Positions 35,684 to 58,273 of a stretch of DNA of 64,000 nucleotides are shown here, piece by piece. The stretch covers positions 3,162,001-3,226,000 of the forward strand of contig OX337235.1 in the NCBI GenBank assembly GCA_946965045.2, in the 5' to 3' direction. Position 1 is the stretch's first letter. Each line of letters begins with the position of its first letter. The stretch is from Epithemia pelagica. Lineage: Eukaryota > Protista > Bacillariophyta. Position numbers and translations under genes: made by a program. A model generated the notes under the pieces. It saw only the letters and a program-made list of their open reading frames with translations. It had not been told where the DNA came from and did no database searches.

Positions 35684-36405
35684 TACCACGTCGGCCGATT
35701 CATTCACGAGCGTCGAACCAGCGTCCACTCGTGAACGGGACTCACGACACTGGATTGGTCGACGCAGAACACAAGGTAATCTACCATGGAAACTACTGGA
35801 AATCATCTCGCTTTGGCTGGAATCTGGAATGCGTTATGCTACCCTCCTACCTACTTTCCAAGTGTCAACCCTTACCCAGGGCTTTCTCACGGTGATGGTA
35901 AACTACAATATATGGAGTGTGCTGCGAACTTGTGTAGGCGAATGATGTTGCTATGCCTTTGAGAGGTAGACTACCTACTACCTACTCCTCGCAATTTCGC
36001 ATCTTCCTGTAAGTTTGTTCGTTGGCAACAAATGAAAAGTGAACAGATAGACGAAGCTTCGTTTTTGATCAACTGAAGACAGAATGTTTTTTGTTTTTGT
36101 GACTTTGACTTTTGCATTTCGAAAGTGTTATACCTGGATCACAATATGAGAAATTGTACAATGCAAAGTTTGGATTGACTTTAAAGTTTCCATGTTCTTG
36201 CTGTAAATTCCCTTGGATGAATCCCAACTTTCACTTGAAAGTAATTGTCCCTTAGTTAACTCCCTGCACGTTTGGTGCAAAGTCAGTCGCACTCGCAACT
36301 CGCAACTCGCAACCAAAACCCCCATTCGATGTCGACGTCATTGGGCATACCCATAAATTCTGGATTCAACGTTCCCTGTGTACTCGTAGGATCAAGACCA
36401 GGACA

Positions 36406-39988
<3,583 letters not shown>

Positions 39989-47432: not shown

Positions 47433-50400
47433 ATGGATCCAACCATGATGGACCGAAGAACCGAACCGCAAGACAATTGGCAAGCAACTTCTTCCTGGCT
47501 GGAAGATTCTTCTTCTTCTTCTCCAGGGATGCACTCTTCTTCTACTTCTCCGTTGCGAATTGTGGATGGACATGACTCGTCGGCACAACAACAGCAATTC
47601 GTTTCGGTTCTTTCCTCGCAACAACAAGAACATGAGCAACCACCGAAAAAGGAAGAACTTCCGCTTTTGGAATATCCAAATACGCTGATGGATGCTCCTA
47701 TTGCGCCCTTGAAGCACGCTGCACCAACGTCCATGGAAGGTTGTCAAGAAATCTTTGTCGGTGGTGGATGGGGAGGTGTCTACAGTTTTTATCGTCGCGT
47801 ATTGGATGGCATGGTGCACAATCAAAGTGCCTCGCAGTATTGTTTGATGGTAGAAGGGGAGCGTTTGGGAGGTCGAACCTATTCGGTAACCGTACCCCGT
47901 CGGTATACCTCCTCGGATCAATTTGTGGTGGAAGTGGGACAAGATGGGCAGTTTTCGTCCAATTTACGATTGACTCATGATTTGATTACACAGCAATTGC
48001 AACTGACCACCGCCTGTGTCCACCCCGATTGTGCGACACCCACCTGGTCCGACTTTAATCCTCTTTTGGGATATGCCAAAGAAGAAGAAGGAAGGCAGCG
48101 ACTGGCTTGGTTTTTGCAAACGACCAATTCCACGCAACTGACACCCTTTCGTCGCATTGTCGATGCTACGACTGGAGTACCCTTGGGCATGGAAACAGCC
48201 TTGGATCAAATGGTGGAAACGTGTCGTCTTTTGGGAGCACGTGTGTTTGACCATACCAAATTGGTTCAACTCCACGTGATTCGGCAACCAAGCACCCCGC
48301 AAAAGACGGTGGAACTCGTCTTTGAACATGCCAAGACGGGGCATCAAACCACCGTAACGAGTAGTAGTAGTAGTATTAGTGCTAGTCCGAGTGGCTTGGC
48401 GACCAAGAAAAAGGACTTGAAGATGACGAAGAATGCGCAAGTGGTGGTGTTGAATCTCCCTCGTTCCGACTTGTTTCAAATCCAAGGTGTGGAAAAGGCC
48501 TTGTTGAATCCTCGTACGGCCAACATTTTGAAATGCCATGTGGACGATCCACCTTCGGCCGTCGTGGGACGTGACCGTGCCGTACAATTGTGGCATCAAC
48601 ACCAACAACAATTTCACGCCACGGCCGGCAAGGCCTACTTGTATTATCCACAGGCCTGGTGGAAGACTGCTTCCTTTTCCTCGCTCATGTCATCGTCCAA
48701 CCACACAACCACTACATGGCCACTGCAAACCAATTCGGATTGGGACACAACAGCTCTGTGGGGTGGTGCCATTCAAACGCGACAAGGTGTCTTGCTCAAG
48801 GTGAATTGGCACAATGGACCGGTGGCATGTTCGGGTGATGACAATGGCCAACACTGTCATGGATTTTTGGAAATATTTTCCTCCCCCTCGAGCAATGAAA
48901 CCTTTTATTCCTCTCTTCCGGCCGCCACTTTATGGGAAACGGACGACGACGACAACAAGAAGAAGAAGGATAAAGTGGACCCCCTCGGCATGGTATGGGT
49001 ACAAGACAGTCCTCATGCCAAACAAGAATTGGGATGGATTCATGAGGCATTAATGGAATCGCTGGCACCTCTTGTTGGGACCACGGAGTGGTCACACGAA
49101 GTAGAACCACCGGTGGGCTTGGTGGTGGGCATTTGGCAACGACCCGCCGACCATGACGACGACTACAAAAACAATAACAAGGGATGGACGAATCCTACCA
49201 AGGTAATTTACGATCCCAGTCTATCGGGAACCTTGGATCAAGCCTGTGGAGTACCTGGATTGACACCGGAATCCTATCAACGGACAGCCTTGCAACCCTT
49301 TGGGTTAAGCAATGGCGACGTGGATGGACAGTTTTTGTTCTTGATTAACAATGACTTTGTCAGTACTCAAGCACAAGAGTATTATGGTGATTGGGCCGAA
49401 GAATCCTTGATTCAAGCCGAACGAGCCATGCATATCATGGGAATGTCCTTGCCCGCTTGGTTGCAAACGGATTATAATTTGAGTCCCCGACATCACTCCC
49501 ATGGTACAACCATTGTGTCCACAACACCCTCCTCCGAGGGCATGTCCGATATAGTCACCTTGCTCTTGGTGTTAAGTGTCATTGTTTCGCTCATGGCCTT
49601 TGTCATGGAAGTAACACGTCGACGAGAACCTCGTGTGGTGGATGTTCCCAAGAAACTACCCGGCAAGGATGACGCCGTCAAAAACACGGATGACGACGAT
49701 GATGATGACGCTGACAAGGTGATTGTTATGTCTTCGGCGGCTCACAAAAAGGGCTTGACATCAGGGCATGGAACAGCCATTTCCTATTTTGGTGAAGTGG
49801 ATGAAACGGATTTGAATACGGAATTCAATGCCGGATCCAAAGATGGTGGCACCGAAGAAGATGTCGACAGTGGCAGCAGCACGGAAGATCATTCGCATCG
49901 ATTGAATTTGTTTCAATTGCACAATATTGCCATTCCAGTCAGTTACTGTGTCTGTGGTACGACGGGTGGTATGTTTCGTACCTTCATGAATGTGTATCCC
50001 CTCGACATTGGGGCCAATGAAGCCCAGCAGACGACGTTCATGACCCTGGCAGCCTTGCCGGCTACCTTTAAGATTTTGTACGGTTTCACGTCCGATACAA
50101 ACCCCCTGTTTGGATATCGTCGCAAACCGTACTTGTTTTTGGGTTGGTTGACTGCGTCGGCCGGCATGTGGTGGCTGCTCATGACATCGGACTTGAGCCT
50201 ACAACGAGAAGAACAAACGATTCTTGAAATTGATGAAAATGGTGTGGAACATGAAGAGACTCATCAGGTAGTTATTGTGCCGGAGAATGCACCAAGCCTC
50301 TTTCGGTTGTGTTGCTGTTTCTTTTTGTACGGCTTTGGTATGTGGTTTGCCAATGCCATGGCCGATGCCTTGGTTGCCGAAAAGGCCAAGTTTGAACCCG

Positions 50401-51386
50401 AAGCTGTACGAGGATCCTTGCAATCGACGTGTTACCTCATGCGATTCTTTGGACTCATGGTGGCGGCTCCGGTTTCGACCTTTTTGTATTCCAAGGTGGG
50501 ACCTCAAGTGATTGTCCAATGCATTGCCGTTATTCCATGCTTTGTACTACCACTCACTTGGTGGTTGGCCGAGGTTCAAGTAGCGGTCCGACCAGTCAAG
50601 GAACAATGTATGGAAATTTGGAGAACCGTGTGTTCACGGTCCGTGTGGGAACCCATGGCCTTTTTGTACTTGTTCAATGTCTTACAAGTCAGCAATGCGG
50701 CCTGGCGTCAATTCCTGGTCACTGTCCTGGGATTTTCTCCCGCCAACCTCAATACTCTGTTGGTGGTATCCTATGTCTTGGTCTACTTGGGCACTACCTT
50801 GTACAAGTATTGCTTGCTACATACCAGTTGGAGATTGATCTATCAGTGTTGTCTGGTCTTGAATCTTATATTCTCGTCATTGCAACTCCTCCTTATTCGA
50901 GGCCACACGTTTGGTATATCTCCTTTCCTCTTTGCCTTGGGCGACGACGCCTTTGCCGAATTTCTCAATGGTATTCAATTCCTACCGGCCGTGGTCATGA
51001 TGGTATCTCTCTGTCCCACTGGGTCAGAGGGTGTCAGCTATGCCATGTTTACAACCGTCATGCATTCGTCGCATCAGATATCCAACGCTATCAGTTCCTT
51101 GTTGCTGGCCATTTGGGATGTGAGCAAGGAGACGCTATCACGAGGCGAATTGGATGGAATGTTCAATTTGTCGCTCTTGACGACCGCCATTCAGTTTTCT
51201 CCCCTCTTGTTCTTGCATTGGTTACCTCATGGACGCAAAGAATTGGAAGAGCTGTCATTGCGACCCTTTTCGGGCAGTGCCATTGGTGGAGGAGTCTTTT
51301 TGTCTGTTCTCTTTGGTTCCATGACCTTGACCGTGTTTGTTTCCGTCATGAACATTGCTCGACCGGGATGGGCGGGTGAATCATGA
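47433..51386 (+). CDS. Flavin amine-oxidase-like domain + single TM + BT1 (folate/biopterin) MFS transporter fusion, copy 1 (~1317 aa, intronless)
   Basis: IFVGGGWGG (47751) and RLGGRTYS FAD-binding motifs; GDWAEESLIQAER end motif; TM at ~49550-49612; BT1 motifs FKILYGFTSDTNPLFGYRRKPYL, ADALVAEK, FALGDD, LCPTGSEG; one uninterrupted ORF. Confidence 0.88.
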   Translation: MDPTMMDRRTEPQDNWQATSSWLEDSSSSSPGMHSSSTSPLRIVDGHDSSAQQQQFVSVLSSQQQEHEQPPKKEELPLLEYPNTLMDAPIAPLKHAAPTSMEGCQEIFVGGGWGGVYSFYRRVLDGMVHNQSASQYCLMVEGERLGGRTYSVTVPRRYTSSDQFVVEVGQDGQFSSNLRLTHDLITQQLQLTTACVHPDCATPTWSDFNPLLGYAKEEEGRQRLAWFLQTTNSTQLTPFRRIVDATTGVPLGMETALDQMVETCRLLGARVFDHTKLVQLHVIRQPSTPQKTVELVFEHAKTGHQTTVTSSSSSISASPSGLATKKKDLKMTKNAQVVVLNLPRSDLFQIQGVEKALLNPRTANILKCHVDDPPSAVVGRDRAVQLWHQHQQQFHATAGKAYLYYPQAWWKTASFSSLMSSSNHTTTTWPLQTNSDWDTTALWGGAIQTRQGVLLKVNWHNGPVACSGDDNGQHCHGFLEIFSSPSSNETFYSSLPAATLWETDDDDNKKKKDKVDPLGMVWVQDSPHAKQELGWIHEALMESLAPLVGTTEWSHEVEPPVGLVVGIWQRPADHDDDYKNNNKGWTNPTKVIYDPSLSGTLDQACGVPGLTPESYQRTALQPFGLSNGDVDGQFLFLINNDFVSTQAQEYYGDWAEESLIQAERAMHIMGMSLPAWLQTDYNLSPRHHSHGTTIVSTTPSSEGMSDIVTLLLVLSVIVSLMAFVMEVTRRREPRVVDVPKKLPGKDDAVKNTDDDDDDDADKVIVMSSAAHKKGLTSGHGTAISYFGEVDETDLNTEFNAGSKDGGTEEDVDSGSSTEDHSHRLNLFQLHNIAIPVSYCVCGTTGGMFRTFMNVYPLDIGANEAQQTTFMTLAALPATFKILYGFTSDTNPLFGYRRKPYLFLGWLTASAGMWWLLMTSDLSLQREEQTILEIDENGVEHEETHQVVIVPENAPSLFRLCCCFFLYGFGMWFANAMADALVAEKAKFEPEAVRGSLQSTCYLMRFFGLMVAAPVSTFLYSKVGPQVIVQCIAVIPCFVLPLTWWLAEVQVAVRPVKEQCMEIWRTVCSRSVWEPMAFLYLFNVLQVSNAAWRQFLVTVLGFSPANLNTLLVVSYVLVYLGTTLYKYCLLHTSWRLIYQCCLVLNLIFSSLQLLLIRGHTFGISPFLFALGDDAFAEFLNGIQFLPAVVMMVSLCPTGSEGVSYAMFTTVMHSSHQISNAISSLLLAIWDVSKETLSRGELDGMFNLSLLTTAIQFSPLLFLHWLPHGRKELEELSLRPFSGSAIGGGVFLSVLFGSMTLTVFVSVMNIARPGWAGES

Positions 51387-51982
51387 GCAACCGCAGCACT
51401 CGTGAGGGGAGACAACCGACGCGACACACACACAAGTGCCAGGCATGGCCACGGACCGCCGCAGATCCGATCCATTCTGTACAGTATACAACCAACACAG
51501 GAAACAACACCATCGCAGCTACCGCGCGCGCAAGATTTGAAACATGAAAACACACACACACACACTTACAAAAACATGGACTAGCATTTACATGAAGAAT
51601 GAAAAAGATACACGTTATGATGACAGAGCAGAATCGTTTAAGATAAGATAAAGAAAGGAGATTCCATTTGTATGCTAGGATCACAATCTATTATTTGTCA
51701 CCGTATCATTGGCGTTTCGCACATCGGACGAAGAACCAAGAAACTCGATATGGGAGTGAACGCAAACTACACAATACCTCTATCTAGACTAGCTACTCTC
51801 TATGTCGGCGTAGATTTTGAATTTTTTAAAAGTCCGGACTCTGACATCATCGACACAGCATGTCGTCGGATCTTTTGTTCGCCCCGACTGTGTCATCATT
51901 GTCATTGTCATTGTGCTCATCTCTGTGGTTACCTTCATTCAAACGTAAGACACCAATACAAGACAACCAATAGCGGAACAAC

Positions 51983-52768
51983 ATGCTGTCATCCAAGGTT
52001 TTGTTGTTCGTGATTGCGGGCTGTTCGGTCCAGTCGGCGACTTGCTTTCGGCCATCCACTGCGGGTGTCCAGCAGCCTGTCCACACTCCTGGTGTGGAAT
52101 TGTCGGCTGAGGCGGTGTCCTCTCCATCCGTGGCCAGCAGTCGAAAAGAATTTTTGAATGAAACCTCCTTGTTGTCACCGGAAACCAATACCTTTGCCAT
52201 TCCACCGGAACAGCTGGTAGAACGTGCCAAGGAAATCTTGGCCCCTCCCATTCGATTGGGAACGCAAGACGACGGGGAATGTTTGGCCGAGAATTTTGAA
52301 TTTTGTGCCGCCGTCGTGGGGCCAATTGGACGCGACGAATACATTCAAGCCTTGGCGTCGTTTCGTTTGGAGGATTGTTTTGAATTGACGCCCAACTTTT
52401 ATGGCTTTTCCGTCGATCCCTTGCAACCCAACCGTGTCTGGTTCTTTAATCGCGTCCAGGCCACACACAGCAAGGCCGCCTTTCTGGGTGCCAAACCCAC
52501 GGGCAAGGAAATTATCTGTCCCCCGCAAGTGCATCACATGGATTTGAATGAGGAAGGAAAGGTGGTGGAATATGGCTTTTATACAGCCGATCGACGACAA
52601 GGCAATACGGGCGGATTGGGTGGCGCCTTTGCCTTTATGTACGGTGTGGGCAAACCCTTGCCCATTCCCGAATGCCGACCCTACAAACGCTCGTGGCAAT
52701 TCCGAGTCTTGAATCTGTTGGGATGGTTGGGACGACGCCTCCAGAAAAACAAGGAACAAGCCAAATAA
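51983..52768 (+). CDS. Probable plastid-targeted SnoaL/NTF2-like protein (261 aa)
   Basis: Signal peptide ending ...SATC-F; LAENFEFCAAVVGPI...VDPLQPNRVWFF...PTGKEIICPPQ...GNTGGLGGAF pattern. Confidence 0.7.
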   Translation: MLSSKVLLFVIAGCSVQSATCFRPSTAGVQQPVHTPGVELSAEAVSSPSVASSRKEFLNETSLLSPETNTFAIPPEQLVERAKEILAPPIRLGTQDDGECLAENFEFCAAVVGPIGRDEYIQALASFRLEDCFELTPNFYGFSVDPLQPNRVWFFNRVQATHSKAAFLGAKPTGKEIICPPQVHHMDLNEEGKVVEYGFYTADRRQGNTGGLGGAFAFMYGVGKPLPIPECRPYKRSWQFRVLNLLGWLGRRLQKNKEQAK

Positions 52769-53619
52769 CGGAGTGTGTTTCATATAGTAGTCCAATGGAG
52801 ATCTGGTGTGGATTAAGTTAAGGACAACCACACCATTCTATAATTCATGACGCAAACAGCGACAATGATCCCATTATAGATATATGCGTTGTGAGCCTTG
52901 CACTACATTGTTCGATTCAAATACCTGGTTCAGTGTCTTTGCGTTCCCAGGGCTAGAAATGGATTTGTCCAAAGTGGTTGTAAGGCGAAATGAGCCATGC
53001 CACAAGGACAGTATGCGCTCGAACGAGAAGATTTTATGCTACCTACTCGCCATTCGGGTTTCCCGAGTGACGCATGATCATGCATGTCTCGCATGTGTCG
53101 AGGAATACTCTCCTCCAGATTTTCCTGTCATGACTACAACCTCCCATTTGCCGATCGGCTCGGAGCTTGAACTACTTTCCGATGTTATTACTGTGAAACT
53201 TGAAGTCAACTTGATTTCGTTCTTGACAATGCGTTGCGCCACGAGCAACCATTGTATCGGTAGTTCGGCTGGCACAAGAGTAGGTATTCCTTTGAATGGT
53301 GTGGTATCCCCACTAGTTGCTTGAGAGAAGGGCTTCCTACATGGCTATCGCTGAGACTGCAGTTTCTGTTCAATCTCTAGAGTGTTATGTCCTTAGTAGT
53401 GTTCTGTTTGTTTTGGTATTTGCTGTTTGTATACATGTATAGTAAATTGTTTTCGTTTCGTGTTGTTGTATGTTCGTTTGTTGGTCAGTCTGTCGATTGC
53501 GTTTCCTTGTTGTGCTCCTCCTTCATGCGTTGGGTGTATCCGTTGGCATTTGGCATGCATGCATTAGCCACCAGTGTTTCACATAGCGCGCGCGTGTGCG
53601 TAGACATGGAGCTTGTTTG

Positions 53620-56600
53620 TTAGGATCCCCCCGCCCATCCAGGACGTGTAATGTTCAATATCGATACCAGTAACGTAATGGTCATGGAACCAAAAAGGAC
53701 TGTCAAAAATATTCTTCCACCCAAGGCACTGCCAGAATAGGGCCGTGACGCCAGTTCTTCCAATTCTTTCCGACCATGAGGTAACCAATGCATAAAGCAC
53801 AAGGGAGAAAACTGGACCAATGACGTCAACAGTGACAGTTTAAACTGAAAACACATTAACAAAGCAAAGCAGACAAAAGACGACCGAAGCGTTAGAGAAA
53901 TGGCCTCCCATAGTTGGACGACACCACACCAAGCGTGGCAAGAAACGAAATCAAACAACATACCATTCCATTCAGTTTCCCTTGTTCCATAGTTTCCTTG
54001 CTCACGTCCCAAATACCCAACAATAGAGAACTGATGGAGTTGGATATCATCCATGATGAATTCATGACTGGTACATACAAGGAAGAAAACAGATCAAAAA
54101 GTGAGTGTGGGCTTCATCCAACAGTCAGTATCACAAGTGATCGGGAAGATTTACCTGTCGTGAAAGTTGCGTAGCTCACGCCTAAAACAAAAGCATTGCA
54201 AAAGTTCGTGAAGACAAGTCATAAGAACCGTGAGACGTGAATCAACATGGGAGCCAAAGATCGCACGAAATTAGTAGGTCTTCTCTCGTACCTTCAGATC
54301 CCGTTGGACACAGCGAGACCATCATGATCACGGCAGGAAGGAACTGAATCCCATTCAAAAACTCGGCAAAAGCGTCATCTCCCAAGGCAAAGAGAAAGGG
54401 TGAAATACCAAAGGTATGTCCGCGAATCAAGAGCAACTGCATGGACGACAAGATAAGATTTAACACTAAACATCCTTGATAAATCAATCGCCAACTGGTA
54501 TGAAGCAAGCAATACTTGTACAGCATGGTCCCCAAATACACCAGTACATAGGATACCACCAGAAGTGTGTTGAGATTGGCAGGTGTGAAATGCAATACCG
54601 TCACCAGGAATTGACGCCAGGCCGCATTGCTCATTTGCAACAGATTGAACAAGTACATAAAGGCCATGGGTTCCCATACCGACCGAGAACATACAGTGCG
54701 CCAAATCTCGTCACATTGCTCCTTGACGGGTTTTACAGTCACCCGCGGTTCCGCCAAGATGTACAAGAGCGGCAACACCAAACACGGTACCCATACCAAG
54801 CATTGAACAATGATTTGCGGGCCGACCCGAGAATACAAAAAGGTCGAAATGGGAGCCGAAACCATGAGTCCAAAGAAACGCATGAGGTAACAAGTCGATT
54901 GCAAGGTCCCTCGTACAGCTTCTGGTTCATACTTGGCTTTTTCGGCAACCAGTGCATCGGTCATGGCATTGGCAAACCACATGCCAAATCCAAAAAGGAA
55001 GAAGCATGTACTCAATTGCAACAAACTCGGAGCATTGTCCGGAACAATGACAATGTCACGCATGTCTTGCTCATGTTCTTGTCCTTCCATCAGTTCGCCT
55101 TCTCCTAACCCTCCGTCTGCTTCGTCTGTTACGACTCGTCGTTCTCGTACCAAGGTCAAGTCACTTGTGGCCAACAGAGACAACATTGTCATGGAGGCCA
55201 AGAACCAACCCAAAAAGAGGTAAGGTTTACGACGATATCCCATAATGGGATTGGTGTCGGAAGTGAACCCGTACAAGATTTTAAAGGCGGCCGGAAGCGC
55301 TGCCAACGTGGCACAGGTGGTCTGTTGTGCTTCATTGGCACCAATATCCAATGGATAGACATTGAGAAAAGTCCGAAACATTCCGGCCGATGTGCCTCCC
55401 ACCCAATAACTGACTGGAATGGCCAGATTCTGCCATCGCCATAAATTCAAGGCATCCTTCCGCACCGCATCGAGTTCTTCCTCACTGGGTCCCTCACCGT
55501 CCTCTTCCTCTTCTTCTGCCGTGTCGCCCTTTTCTGGTTCAGCTCCTCCCTCCACCAAGAGGTTATTCCTTGACTTTTTGGAACTACTATCATCCCGTGT
55601 CAGATCCATGCCATCAACATCACCAAAGAAGGAGACAATGGAACGACCTTGTGGCTTGATCTTTTGTGATTTGGCTTCTTGTTCCTTTTCTGTTTTTTCT
55701 TGTTGTTGTTCCTCCGGAATGGCATCGGCATTCCAGTGCAACAATTGATCTGCATCCTGTGCCGCGGCACGGCTATACTTTTTATTATTTCCCGGTCGTC
55801 GTCTCCATACTTCATAGACAAACAAACCCAGAGACAAGGCGACGATGGATCCCAAGGCTGCCACGGAGGCAATCGTCATGCCCGGTACGGGTGTTTTCCG
55901 GGTCAAGAATTGTGCGGGATGGACGACATGACGTTGATAATAGTCGGCACTTTTCAACCAGGCTGGTTTCGGTGTCCCCAACAAGTACATGGCACGTTCG
56001 GCTTGCATCAAGGATTCTTCGGCCCAATCCCCCATGGAATGACGAACATTGGTACAAACAAAGTCATTGTTGACGACAAAAATGCGCGGTGTTTCGGATA
56101 CTTGAGTGTTGGTTTTCGTCATGGTCATGAGATTGCGACGACGACGGTTCGTCGTCGTGGTGCTGTCGTCGTCGTCGGGTTCCATGACGGCCGACAATGG
56201 TTGGACATGAAAGGGTTGCAAGACGGTATGTCGATAGGTTTCTTCCGTCAATCCAGCGACACCGCCACAGGCTTGATCGGGTGGACCGGACATGGAAGGT
56301 TCATACAAGACCTTGGTGGGATCCGTCCATCCAACACCGAGTGGATGCTGGTCGTATCGAGGATTGGGACGTTGCCAAATGCCCACCACCATACCCGTGG
56401 GAGGTTCTACCAAGGACCGAGCTTGTTGCAATTCACTTGTGGCATTCCAAAGGGGTGCCAGGGATTCCATGAGAGCCGCATGGACCAATCCCAATTCCAC
56501 TCGGGCATGGGGACTGTCTTGGACCCAAACCATACCCAAGGGATCTTCGAGTTGCGGCAAACTGGTTTCATCTTGCAAATCGGTTGCTGCTGGTAGAGAA

Positions 56601-58273
56601 GAATAAAAGGTTTCATTGCTCACGGAATAATACACTTCCAAAAAGCCACGACATGTTCTTGTTGTCGTCGTCGTCGTCAAGGACGAATCGGCCGCCGTGG
56701 TCCAGGAAGACGAATCGTCTCCGGTAATATCACTCACTTCATATTCTCCCTCTTCTTCTTGGACATTGTCCTTTGGATGGGCAATGGTCGTGGTTTGACA
56801 TTGGACCGGTCCATCGTGCCATCGTACCTTGAGCAAAACACCTTGCGGCGTTTCGACGGGCGGACTCCCCAGAGCCTCGTCAAATGTACCATCTGGCACG
56901 GTGGTGGTGGTCGACGTTGATGCATTGGTGGTCGTGGTGCTAATGGACGTTTCATTCATTCCATATTGCTTGTCTGGCACGGACGACGGCGGCCAGGTTC
57001 CATGTGTCTTGTTCAAGAGGGTATGCCACCAGGCTTGGTCGTAATACAAGTAGGCCTTGCCAAAGGTGGTACGATATTGCTGTTGATCTTGCAATCGTTG
57101 CACGGCCTGTTGGCCAAACAAATCAACGGGTGTATCCCACACCATGCATTCCAAGGTTTGTACCACGGGTGGTTCCAAGGCTTCCCGCAACCCTTCGACT
57201 TGCAACAAGTGATGGCGTGGCAAATTCAAGACCAACACCTTGACCGTCGTCGGACGGTCCTCCAGTCGCGAGTCGGTAGGAGTTTTTGTCGCATTGACGG
57301 ACGTTGCATTGGGGGTATTGTGGTGAGTACGGCTCGACGGGTGATAAATCACGGGAGATCGCACCCCCGTGGCCGTATTTTCAAACACAATTTGAAACCG
57401 ATCCTTGTCGTCGTCGTCGTCCTCCACGTTGGGGTGGTCGTCTGGTTTCTTCATTTGAGGAATGTGCAGTTGAACCAATTTGGTTTGCAAAAAGACGCGA
57501 GCACCATGGTCTTGACAGGCTTGCACCATGTGTTGCAAGGCCGTATCAAAGCCGGTCGGCAAGCCGGTCGTCGGATCGACCATGCGTCGAAAGGGTGCCG
57601 TATAATTCCAATAGGATTGTTCGGGAAATTCCGAATGATCGGGCGGCGGACAGGTCGGATCGTAACAGACGGTTGGCAATTGCAAATGATGCATCATTAA
57701 ATCTCCCATGAGTTGCATATCTGGCGTAAATCGATAGGCACCGACATCCACGACAAAGTCCGTGCCGTTGGTATGACGATGCGAGACGGGGACGGAATAG
57801 GTGCGGCCACCAATCCGACTGGATTGTTCCATCAAACAATACTGGGAGGCACTTTGATTGCGGGCCACGCCATCCATGACGCGCCGATAAAAACTATAAA
57901 CACCACCCCATCCAGCACCGACAAAGATTTCTTGACATCCTTGATAGGGATTGGGATGAGGATAGTGCAATTTGGGTGTCGTTGTTGTTGTTGTAGATGC
58001 CTTGTCCGTGTCATCGGTTTGCAACAAGGGCAAGGAGATTTCCGGTCGCGATTGTGCGGCACGTCGACGTGAGTGACTTGCTGCCGCCAAAGGGCTGTGG
58101 CGAATATGGGGTGTTGTTGGAGAGGATAGCTTCTCATCCTCTTCCTTGTTTACGTTGTTGTTGTTGTTGTTATGGCTGTTGGATTCTGCTTTTGCCGCGA
58201 CGCCATTGGTGGTCCATGCCATGATGATGATGATGAGAAGGATGCCAACCAACCAAGACTTTAGTAGTAGCAA
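53620..58273 (-). CDS. Flavin amine-oxidase::BT1 transporter fusion, copy 2; exons 58273-54292, 54181-54155, 54067-53964, 53844-53620; signal-peptide-like N-terminus
   Basis: IFVGAGWGG, RIGGRTYS, VDVGAYRF, GDWAEESLMQAER; TM; BT1 motifs. Three GT-AG introns restore the C-terminus collinearly with copy 1. The ORF opens at TTG 58273; the first ATG is at 58222. Confidence 0.88.

Follow-up and report, generated by a model that had tools for sequence, protein, structure and literature searches.

Two convergent genes lie within a 64,000-nucleotide stretch of the genome of the diatom Epithemia pelagica (contig OX337235.1 of assembly GCA_946965045.2, positions 3,162,001 to 3,226,000 of the forward strand; this whole stretch is called the window, and its own numbering is used throughout). 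Copy 1 is on the plus strand and copy 2 on the minus strand (Table 1), and each is predicted to encode a single polypeptide that joins an L-amino-acid oxidase (LAAO)-type flavoenzyme to a carrier of the BT1 family, a branch of the major facilitator superfamily (MFS). Both halves come from known superfamilies. Their combination is newly seen: an oxidase-BT1 fusion was found neither in the literature searched nor in protein collections outside Rhopalodiaceae. To our knowledge, natural enzyme-transporter fusions are rare in eukaryotes. The general kind is nevertheless not new, because predicted fungal fusions of a flavoenzyme with an MFS carrier exist.

Structure and transcription of the two genes

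The two genes have the same order of parts, namely a low-complexity extension of about 90-100 residues, an oxidase domain of about 580-670 residues, a transmembrane (TM) helix referred to as TM0, a linker and a BT1 transporter. The oxidase domain of both copies bears the motifs GxGxxG, RxGGRTYS and GDWAEESLxQAER. TM0 is strongly hydrophobic and is followed by RRR in copy 1 and WRRR in copy 2, and the linker is acidic and about 90-120 residues long. An initial annotation, made from the letters of the window and their open reading frames (ORFs), had already quoted these motifs and the long frames that contain them; the frames lie where it had put them, and translation showed the motifs in both copies, those of copy 2 reading GAGWGG, RIGGRTYS and GDWAEESLMQAER. 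In addition, four of the five fusion proteins keep a linker motif, [SF][YF]FG[DE]VDxxDL (copy 1: window 49770-49805, plus strand); the protein P0002 lacks it, as do the BT1 proteins that stand alone. It may serve in sorting or interaction.

The ORF translation of copy 1 is uninterrupted on the plus strand and contains the entire transporter, as the initial annotation had claimed for both genes. For copy 2 this part of the claim had to be revised. Its ORF (54242-58273) stops at 54242, and a C-terminus like that of copy 1 resumes downstream in other frames. The coding frame leaves this ORF at 54292, and the final 117 codons, which lie beyond it, are spread over three further exons that end in ...PGWAGGS, a C-terminus resembling that of copy 1. 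A pseudogenic C-terminus was considered for copy 2 and rejected, since the apparent frameshifts are three GT..AG introns confirmed by joints in RNA.

The locus is present in four public sequencing runs, three of them DNA-like and one, X2, RNA-like. In the DNA-like runs it lies on contigs of hundreds of kilobases that have no joints at the copy 2 introns. The contigs of X2 omit 53845-53963, 54068-54154 and 54182-54291, which are exactly the predicted introns, with CT..AC ends on the plus strand, and the depth of this run is 577-1199 over copy 2 versus 9-50 in the flank. One of its contigs (contig 11, 2263 nt) starts at 53446 in the 3' untranslated region, crosses the spliced exons and then continues unbroken over 54291-56024; it is thus unspliced through the transporter, the linker and TM0 into the oxidase domain (to about codon 733), of which it includes about 70 codons. 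A second contig (contig 12) overlaps the first at 56000-56024 and extends to 58048 (about codon 58). One mRNA and one open frame therefore span both halves of copy 2. No transcript end or splice between the domains, which the initial annotation had named in advance as the observation that would speak against a fusion, was seen for copy 2 in X2. Contigs of all four runs, DNA and RNA, break at 56000-56024 inside copy 2; because the DNA runs break at the same 25 nt, this is a feature of the assembly graph and not the end of a transcript. For copy 1, X2 contains 86% of the sampled words, which is only weak evidence for expression. The presence of two paralogues, the orthologues in two other genomes and the RNA contig that crosses the junction without a splice bear out the view of the initial annotation that this is a single-gene fusion and no assembly chimera.

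Table 1. Features of the two fusion genes (window coordinates).
Feature	Position	Strand	Remarks
Copy 1 coding sequence	47433..51386	+	1317 aa plus stop, intronless, complete; ATG 47433, stop 51384-51386
Copy 1 N-terminal extension	47433..47726	+	aa 1-98, low complexity, without hydrophobic signal peptide
Copy 1 LAAO-like flavin domain	47727..49475	+	aa 99-681, degenerate (departs at 10 of 49 family-conserved positions)
Copy 1 GGGWGG (GxGxxG)	47760-47777	+	checked by translation
Copy 1 RLGGRTYS	47862-47885	+	checked by translation
Copy 1 Gln173	47949..47951	+	in place of family Arg (VGAYRF motif)
Copy 1 GDWAEESLIQAER motif	49386-49424	+	checked by translation
Copy 1 single TM helix (TM0)	49551..49607	+	hydropathy, by eye
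Copy 1 RRR after TM0	49617-49625	+	
Copy 1 acidic linker	49626..49898	+	with conserved SYFGEVDETDL
Copy 1 BT1/MFS half	49899..51383	+	aa 823-1317; MFS motif A GFTSDTNPLFGYRRKP; extra C-terminal hydrophobic helix
Copy 2 gene	58222-53620	-	1428 aa; spliced coding sequence 4287 nt, in frame, one terminal stop
Hydrophobic stretch LLLLKSWLVGILLIIII	58223..58273	-	in frame, 5' of first ATG of copy 2 (58222)
Copy 2 exon 1	54292..58222	-	aa 1-1311: extension, LAAO domain, TM0, linker, BT1 start
Copy 2 LAAO domain	55940-57952 (aa 91-761)	-	
Copy 2 Arg164 of GAYRF	57731..57733	-	aligns with LAAO carboxylate-binding Arg
Copy 2 TM0	55817-55873	-	followed by YEVWRRR
Copy 2 BT1 half	begins 55453	-	
Copy 2 intron 1	54182..54291	-	110 nt, GT..AG, phase 1; joint in RNA run X2
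Copy 2 micro-exon (G)VSYATFTT	54155..54181	-	27 nt
Copy 2 intron 2	54068..54154	-	87 nt, GT..AG
Copy 2 exon 3	53964..54067	-	
Copy 2 intron 3	53845..53963	-	119 nt, GT..AG
Copy 2 last exon	53620..53844	-	ends ...PGWAGGS + TAA

Ancestry and divergence of the oxidase and carrier halves

The oxidase half belongs to a small, ancestrally secreted LAAO family of algae. Against the Pfam model Amino_oxidase (PF01593), the N-domain of copy 2 scores 19.4 bits, below the cut-off of 19.8 (E 7e-4), and that of copy 1 gives no match. A profile made from seven Epithemia-type oxidase domains picked up 324 relatives in a set of 1.84 billion representatives. Those of full length, at 460-650 aa, stand alone and come from eukaryotic algae such as Tetraselmis, Bryopsis, Chromera and Pyropia, and Pfam Amino_oxidase is matched by 40 of the 44 family members that were aligned (best E 6.5e-20). 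When compared with the Protein Data Bank (PDB), the 44-sequence profile matches over its full length a Pseudomonas arginine oxidase (8t8a/8jt7, E 1.8e-40) and an ancestral L-Lys oxidase (7eih, E 2.7e-37), along with ancestral LAAOs and a Pseudoalteromonas LAAO at E 1e-27 to 1e-29. The same alignment yielded an AlphaFold (AF2) model of the copy 2 domain with a mean predicted local distance difference test score (pLDDT) of 82.5 and a predicted template modelling score (pTM) of 0.84, which replaced an unusable first model built from 7 sequences (pLDDT 46.5). The best PDB matches of this model are all LAAOs (Z 25.3-22.5, 332-371 residues aligned), with 7eii, 7eih, 8jt7 and 8t8a at the top (Z 25.3-24.3), and the modelled domain is for this reason assigned to the LAAO type of flavoenzyme rather than to the monoamine oxidases. 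The initial annotation had placed the domain in a joint monoamine oxidase/LAAO family; the second half of that assignment is retained, as a member of the algal secreted family, and the first is dropped on both profile and fold matches.

The diatom domain and the solved LAAOs (8jt7/8t8a, 7eih/7eii, 7og2 from Pseudoalteromonas luteoviolacea and 2jae from Rhodococcus opacus) have the same fold (Z 22.5-25.3; profile E 1e-28 to 1e-40) and share the collinear motifs GxGxxG, RxGGR, VG-x-x-R, K-x-Y-x-x-Y-x-x-x-WW and W-x-E-x-x-L-x-x-AE, at a sequence identity of only 18-19%. The solved enzymes are soluble, stand-alone proteins, whereas the diatom domain adds a C-terminal TM helix and a whole transporter. 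It also differs from them in its long Thr/Ser/Asn-rich insertions, its N-terminal extension of about 100 residues and its 9-10 conserved Cys. Closer at hand, the stand-alone relatives in Tetraselmis, Bryopsis, Chromera and Pyropia are of the same protein family and have N-terminal signal peptides, and such secreted proteins fit an extracellular nitrogen-scavenging or H2O2-producing role. In contrast, the rhopalodiacean clade shows no recognisable signal peptide; a TM helix has been added and, in the fusions, the carrier as well. Chlamydomonas LAO1, which is periplasmic, and the amino-acid oxidases at the cell surface of marine phytoplankton are likened to these proteins by function only.

The initial annotation treated the two copies alike, and this does not hold for their oxidase halves. 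Of the 49 alignment columns in which at least 85% of the 44-member family agree, copy 2 has the consensus residue in all (49/49), whereas copy 1 departs from it in 10. One of these departures is in the VGAYRF motif, whose Arg is kept in 98% of the family and lines up with VGGMRW of the arginine oxidase 8t8a; copy 1 reads VGQDGQF, with Gln173 in place of the Arg, and lacks nine other conserved positions. In the LAAO of the snake Calloselasma rhodostoma (from venom), Arg90 forms a salt bridge with the alpha-carboxylate of the substrate (PMC6149928), and the VGAYRF Arg (Arg164 of copy 2) would correspond to it by its position in the motif. Furthermore, Glu42 at the end of beta2, where an acidic residue is expected to bind the ribose of flavin adenine dinucleotide (FAD), is found in 43 of 44 family sequences and is present in copy 2. 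Copy 1 has Val in this column and a Glu one residue later (CLMVEGE vs CLMEQSS), so that its FAD-ribose Glu is doubtful. In the oxidase tree, the branch of the copy 1 domain is long (0.98 versus 0.22-0.35).

Both copies are under purifying selection. The ratios of nonsynonymous to synonymous substitution rates (dN/dS) come from a comparison of copy 1 with its allele in L001, a second assembly of the same locus (98% protein identity), and amount to 0.093 overall, 0.21 in the oxidase, 0.083 in TM0 plus linker and 0.011 in the carrier. The overall value, together with the open frame, rules out copy 1 as a pseudogene. Judged by its residues, copy 2 looks catalytically intact, and copy 1 has a decayed oxidase on a strongly conserved carrier, which makes the pair a natural experiment. 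The divergence between the two assemblies or haplotypes shifts sharply across the locus: between copy 1 and L001, dS is 0.057 and about 2% of flank bases differ, and copy 2, at a distance of just 2 kb, shows 99.98% identity.

The carrier half matches the Pfam model BT1 (PF03092) with 152.6 bits in copy 1 and 122.8 bits in the first exon of copy 2 alone, at a cut-off of 22. Along its entire (100%) length it shares 50-65% identity with BT1 proteins that stand alone in diatoms (500-700 aa), among them those of Fistulifera, Seminavis, Fragilariopsis, Cyclotella, Skeletonema and Thalassiosira and the protein P0158 of E. clementina. This stand-alone subfamily is present in all diatom groups, its invariant residues are common to the fusion carrier, and its Seminavis member is annotated 'Folate-biopterin transporter'. 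MFS motif A, GFTSDTNPLFGYRRKP, at residues 883-899 of copy 1, is invariant in diatom orthologues, and the hydropathy is compatible with 12 core helices and one extra C-terminal helix, the helices being counted from hydropathy and by eye. Across the diatom BT1 subfamily, an extra hydrophobic helix lies past the Pfam core (window 51250-51383, plus strand) and the C-terminus is a near-invariant PGW(A/S)GES, which points to a 13th TM helix and an outside C-terminus. In comparison with the BT1/folate-biopterin family, the fusion carrier has a clear Pfam match and motif A, but also the extra C-terminal helix and a conserved PGWAGES end. A sequence search of the PDB with the BT1 profile found no solved relative.

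Three architecture searches were made: with the whole protein, with the oxidase profile against all representative proteins of any length, and with the BT1 half against long proteins. In all three, oxidase and BT1 were combined only in rhopalodiacean diatoms. The fusion occurs in three rhopalodiacean genomes, always in at least two copies, which gives at least five genes, in tandem. The species of the window is also represented by the ENA assembly ERZ21939226, with the same gene order. E. clementina has two tandem fusion genes, both named 'hypothetical protein'. As the initial annotation supposed, no description of the fusion came to light. A third rhopalodiacean genome from ENA has two full copies and a carrier-only fragment. 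This partial copy is reversed, adjoins the two full fusions (L004:13227-15589, minus strand; L004:17700-19693) and has a Copia-type (RVT_2) element as its neighbour; upstream in L001 there is likewise an RVT_2 gene. Two long BT1 proteins from outside Rhopalodiaceae, Nitzschia P0278 (884 aa) and P0247 (852 aa), were set aside as they contain no oxidase; the N-terminus of one is methyltransferase-like and that of the other is of low complexity.

The trees of the two halves agree with each other. In that of the oxidase, all fusions group together (100/99), as sister to the rhopalodiacean LAAOs P0006 and P0007, which have a C-terminal TM helix only; next outward are the TM-anchored P0008 and then the signal-peptide-bearing algal enzymes. 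The fusions also form one clade (100/99) in the carrier tree, sister to the stand-alone BT1 of the lineage, with copy 1 paired with P0002 and copy 2 with P0003, and the orthologous pairs match between the trees. Taken together, the trees indicate one fusion event in Rhopalodiaceae, in which a TM-anchored LAAO was joined to a duplicated copy of the BT1 gene of the lineage itself, followed by duplication. The simplest history would lead from a secreted LAAO to a TM-anchored one, then to one fusion, and then to a duplication that preceded the split of the species. Outside the named Epithemia genomes, the closest LAAO with a TM anchor is P0008; next to its gene lies a fragment of a gene, with the N-terminal domain of alanine dehydrogenase / transhydrogenase (L003:575-1009).

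Gene structure adds a further difference between the copies. The three 3' introns, including the 27-nt micro-exon, are common to copy 2, both E. clementina orthologues and the copies of the third genome. Copy 1 has no introns (compared with L002:10001-14992), whereas its E. clementina orthologue keeps all three. Because the introns are shared so widely, copy 1 must have lost them recently, alongside the faster evolution of its oxidase half.

The nearest clusters in the ESM Atlas to the whole protein by language-model features (score 0.75-0.76, a lead only) are fungal. These are FMO-like+MFS_1+Pyr_redox_2 proteins of about 1000 aa and FAD_binding_3+MFS_1 'phenol monooxygenase' proteins of about 1180 aa, and they likewise join an FAD enzyme and an MFS carrier in one polypeptide. 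However, they are cytosolic monooxygenases of Ascomycota with another MFS family, and have no sequence relationship to the diatom proteins past the superfamilies.

Membrane orientation and possible functions

We infer that the oxidase lies on the non-cytoplasmic face of its membrane, at the cell surface or in a lumen, because one extra helix precedes the MFS core, with an acidic N-side and RRR on the C-side. In the standard MFS topology, motif A and the N-terminus are in the cytoplasm. If the fusions follow this usual topology, their motif A (YRRK), located between TM2 and TM3, should face the cytoplasm, and so should the basic residues behind TM0. An outside orientation also fits the secreted ancestry of the domain (the stand-alone algal relatives almost all begin with signal peptides), the 9-10 conserved Cys and two conserved N-x-T sequons, and the Thr/Ser-rich insertions.

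The function that we tentatively favour, while giving it somewhat less than an even chance, is that of an outward-facing LAAO, active in copy 2, at the mouth of a carrier that takes up an amino-acid-derived compound. The copy 2 oxidase is predicted to deaminate an L-amino acid to a 2-oxo acid, NH4+ and H2O2. Tethering would put this chemistry at the mouth of the carrier, the amino-acid-derived product (or substrate) would be imported, and the fusion would act as a coupled unit for scavenging organic nitrogen. Copy 1 would most likely keep only a binding or structural role on its fully conserved carrier, because the carboxylate-binding Arg and other conserved residues have been lost. Here, the fusion works like a Rosetta stone that points to a functional link between enzyme and transporter, and an orphan, diatom-wide BT1 subfamily thereby gains a testable lead, namely amino-acid-derived substrates and organic-nitrogen scavenging at the cell surface.

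Several observations weigh against this proposal. In all eight rhopalodiacean members of the family, the sequence that follows the first ATG lacks a signal peptide, and no upstream signal-peptide exon was found in the 2 kb before the five fusion genes or among the ORFs upstream of copy 2. The initial annotation had read a signal-like leader in copy 2; this stretch, LLLLKSWLVGILLIIII, lies upstream of the first ATG and is not translated as the sequence stands, because the frame that opens after the stop at 58438-58436 holds no earlier ATG. Lack of a signal peptide leaves the membrane crossing of a domain of about 700 residues unexplained and makes a cytosolic oxidase possible. As for the carrier, the known substrates of BT1 proteins, which are folate, pterins and S-adenosylmethionine, are not products of LAAOs. 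The score of the fusion carrier against the curated folate/biopterin subfamily (TIGR00788 fbt) is 124.5 bits, below the cut-off of 216.4, and a folate or pterin substrate is thus not implied; of the folate/pterin BT1 carrier proposed in the initial annotation, the BT1 family remains and the substrate no longer follows. Finally, the depth of X2 is about twice as high over the 3' half of copy 2 (1199 vs 577), which could be 3' bias or a second transcript that codes for the carrier alone, and the polypeptide may be cleaved within the linker after translation.

The main rival is that the fusion only fixes a surface or lumenal LAAO to the membrane. The carrier would then work independently on an unrelated substrate, with no coupling, and the oxidase, as elsewhere among algae, would release ammonium or take part in a defence based on H2O2. 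Tethering predates the fusion, in that P0006, P0007 and P0008 are LAAOs with one C-terminal TM helix and no carrier. The carrier half is also nearly unchanged from its stand-alone orthologues, and in copy 1 it is strongly conserved beside a decayed oxidase (dN/dS 0.011 vs 0.21). On the other hand, three genomes have retained the fusion, with at least two paralogues, from a time before their species split, its linker contains a conserved motif, and the stand-alone BT1 P0158 and the TM-only LAAOs persist in the lineage, which argues that the joined form adds something. A mere anchor is accordingly put at about one chance in four, and coupling to uptake at the carrier mouth stays the preferred reading.

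It is rather unlikely that the flavoprotein faces the cytosol as a regulatory or sensing module (for redox state or an amino acid) of the carrier, either transceptor-like or as a degenerate pseudo-enzyme. Such an arrangement would agree with the absence of a signal peptide from every rhopalodiacean member, with the loss of the carboxylate-aligned Arg and the displaced beta2-end Glu in copy 1, and with the predicted cytosolic flavoenzyme-MFS fusions of fungi (the FMO-like+MFS_1 and FAD_binding_3+MFS_1 clusters). However, a single TM helix before a canonical MFS core would then invert the carrier, or place RRR and motif A outside. Moreover, the 9-10 Cys and the sequons, a legacy of secreted ancestors, are still invariant, and copy 2 retains all 49 conserved positions of the catalytic family.

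A role in symbiosis is less probable still. The fusion would here reside in the host membrane around the diazoplast, where an oxidase facing the lumen or the symbiont uses O2 and/or deaminates symbiont amino acids, and the attached carrier would move the product or a cofactor across this membrane, as a host-built interface for nitrogen transfer. The fusion is found, in multiple copies, only in Rhopalodiaceae, which are diatoms with diazoplasts (nitrogen-fixing endosymbionts), the RNA depth of copy 2 is high, and diazoplast genomes have in part lost vitamin and cofactor pathways including that of folate (preprint 10.64898/2026.04.23.720389). It is by distribution alone that the fusion becomes a candidate for the host side of metabolite exchange in this symbiosis, and it is not among six host proteins that were found enriched when diazoplasts of E. 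clementina were purified, although the host membrane may be lost in that purification (PMC12377750). These six proteins have no recognisable domains and are for that reason not BT1 fusions, which rules out a link between them and the genes described here.

Very improbable, finally, is that there is no functional fusion at all and that read-through of two genes or a decaying locus gives separate products (from an internal carrier start, or none), as the RNA word depth, about twofold higher over the carrier than over the oxidase half, and the degenerate copy 1 oxidase might hint, given that frames of 1317 and 1428 codons stay open and are kept in at least five genes of three genomes, the RNA is contiguous over the junction, every segment including TM0 and linker is under purifying selection (dN/dS 0.083 for these two) and the linker motif is conserved.

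Surrounding sequence

Between the two copies lies a gene on the plus strand (51983-52768) whose product of 261 aa has a hydrophobic N-terminus and no Pfam match. Similar proteins of the NTF2/SnoaL/DUF2358 kind are found in diatoms and haptophytes, and the gene is conserved in L001. A functional link of this NTF2/SnoaL-like algal protein to the fusions was ruled out, as it is absent from the E. clementina locus. Elsewhere in the window, positions 36000-39400 have a GC content of 0.36, a GC skew of -0.68 and an AT skew of +0.75, with overlapping ORFs of 750-960 codons in five frames, and are probably a long low-complexity or tandem repeat.

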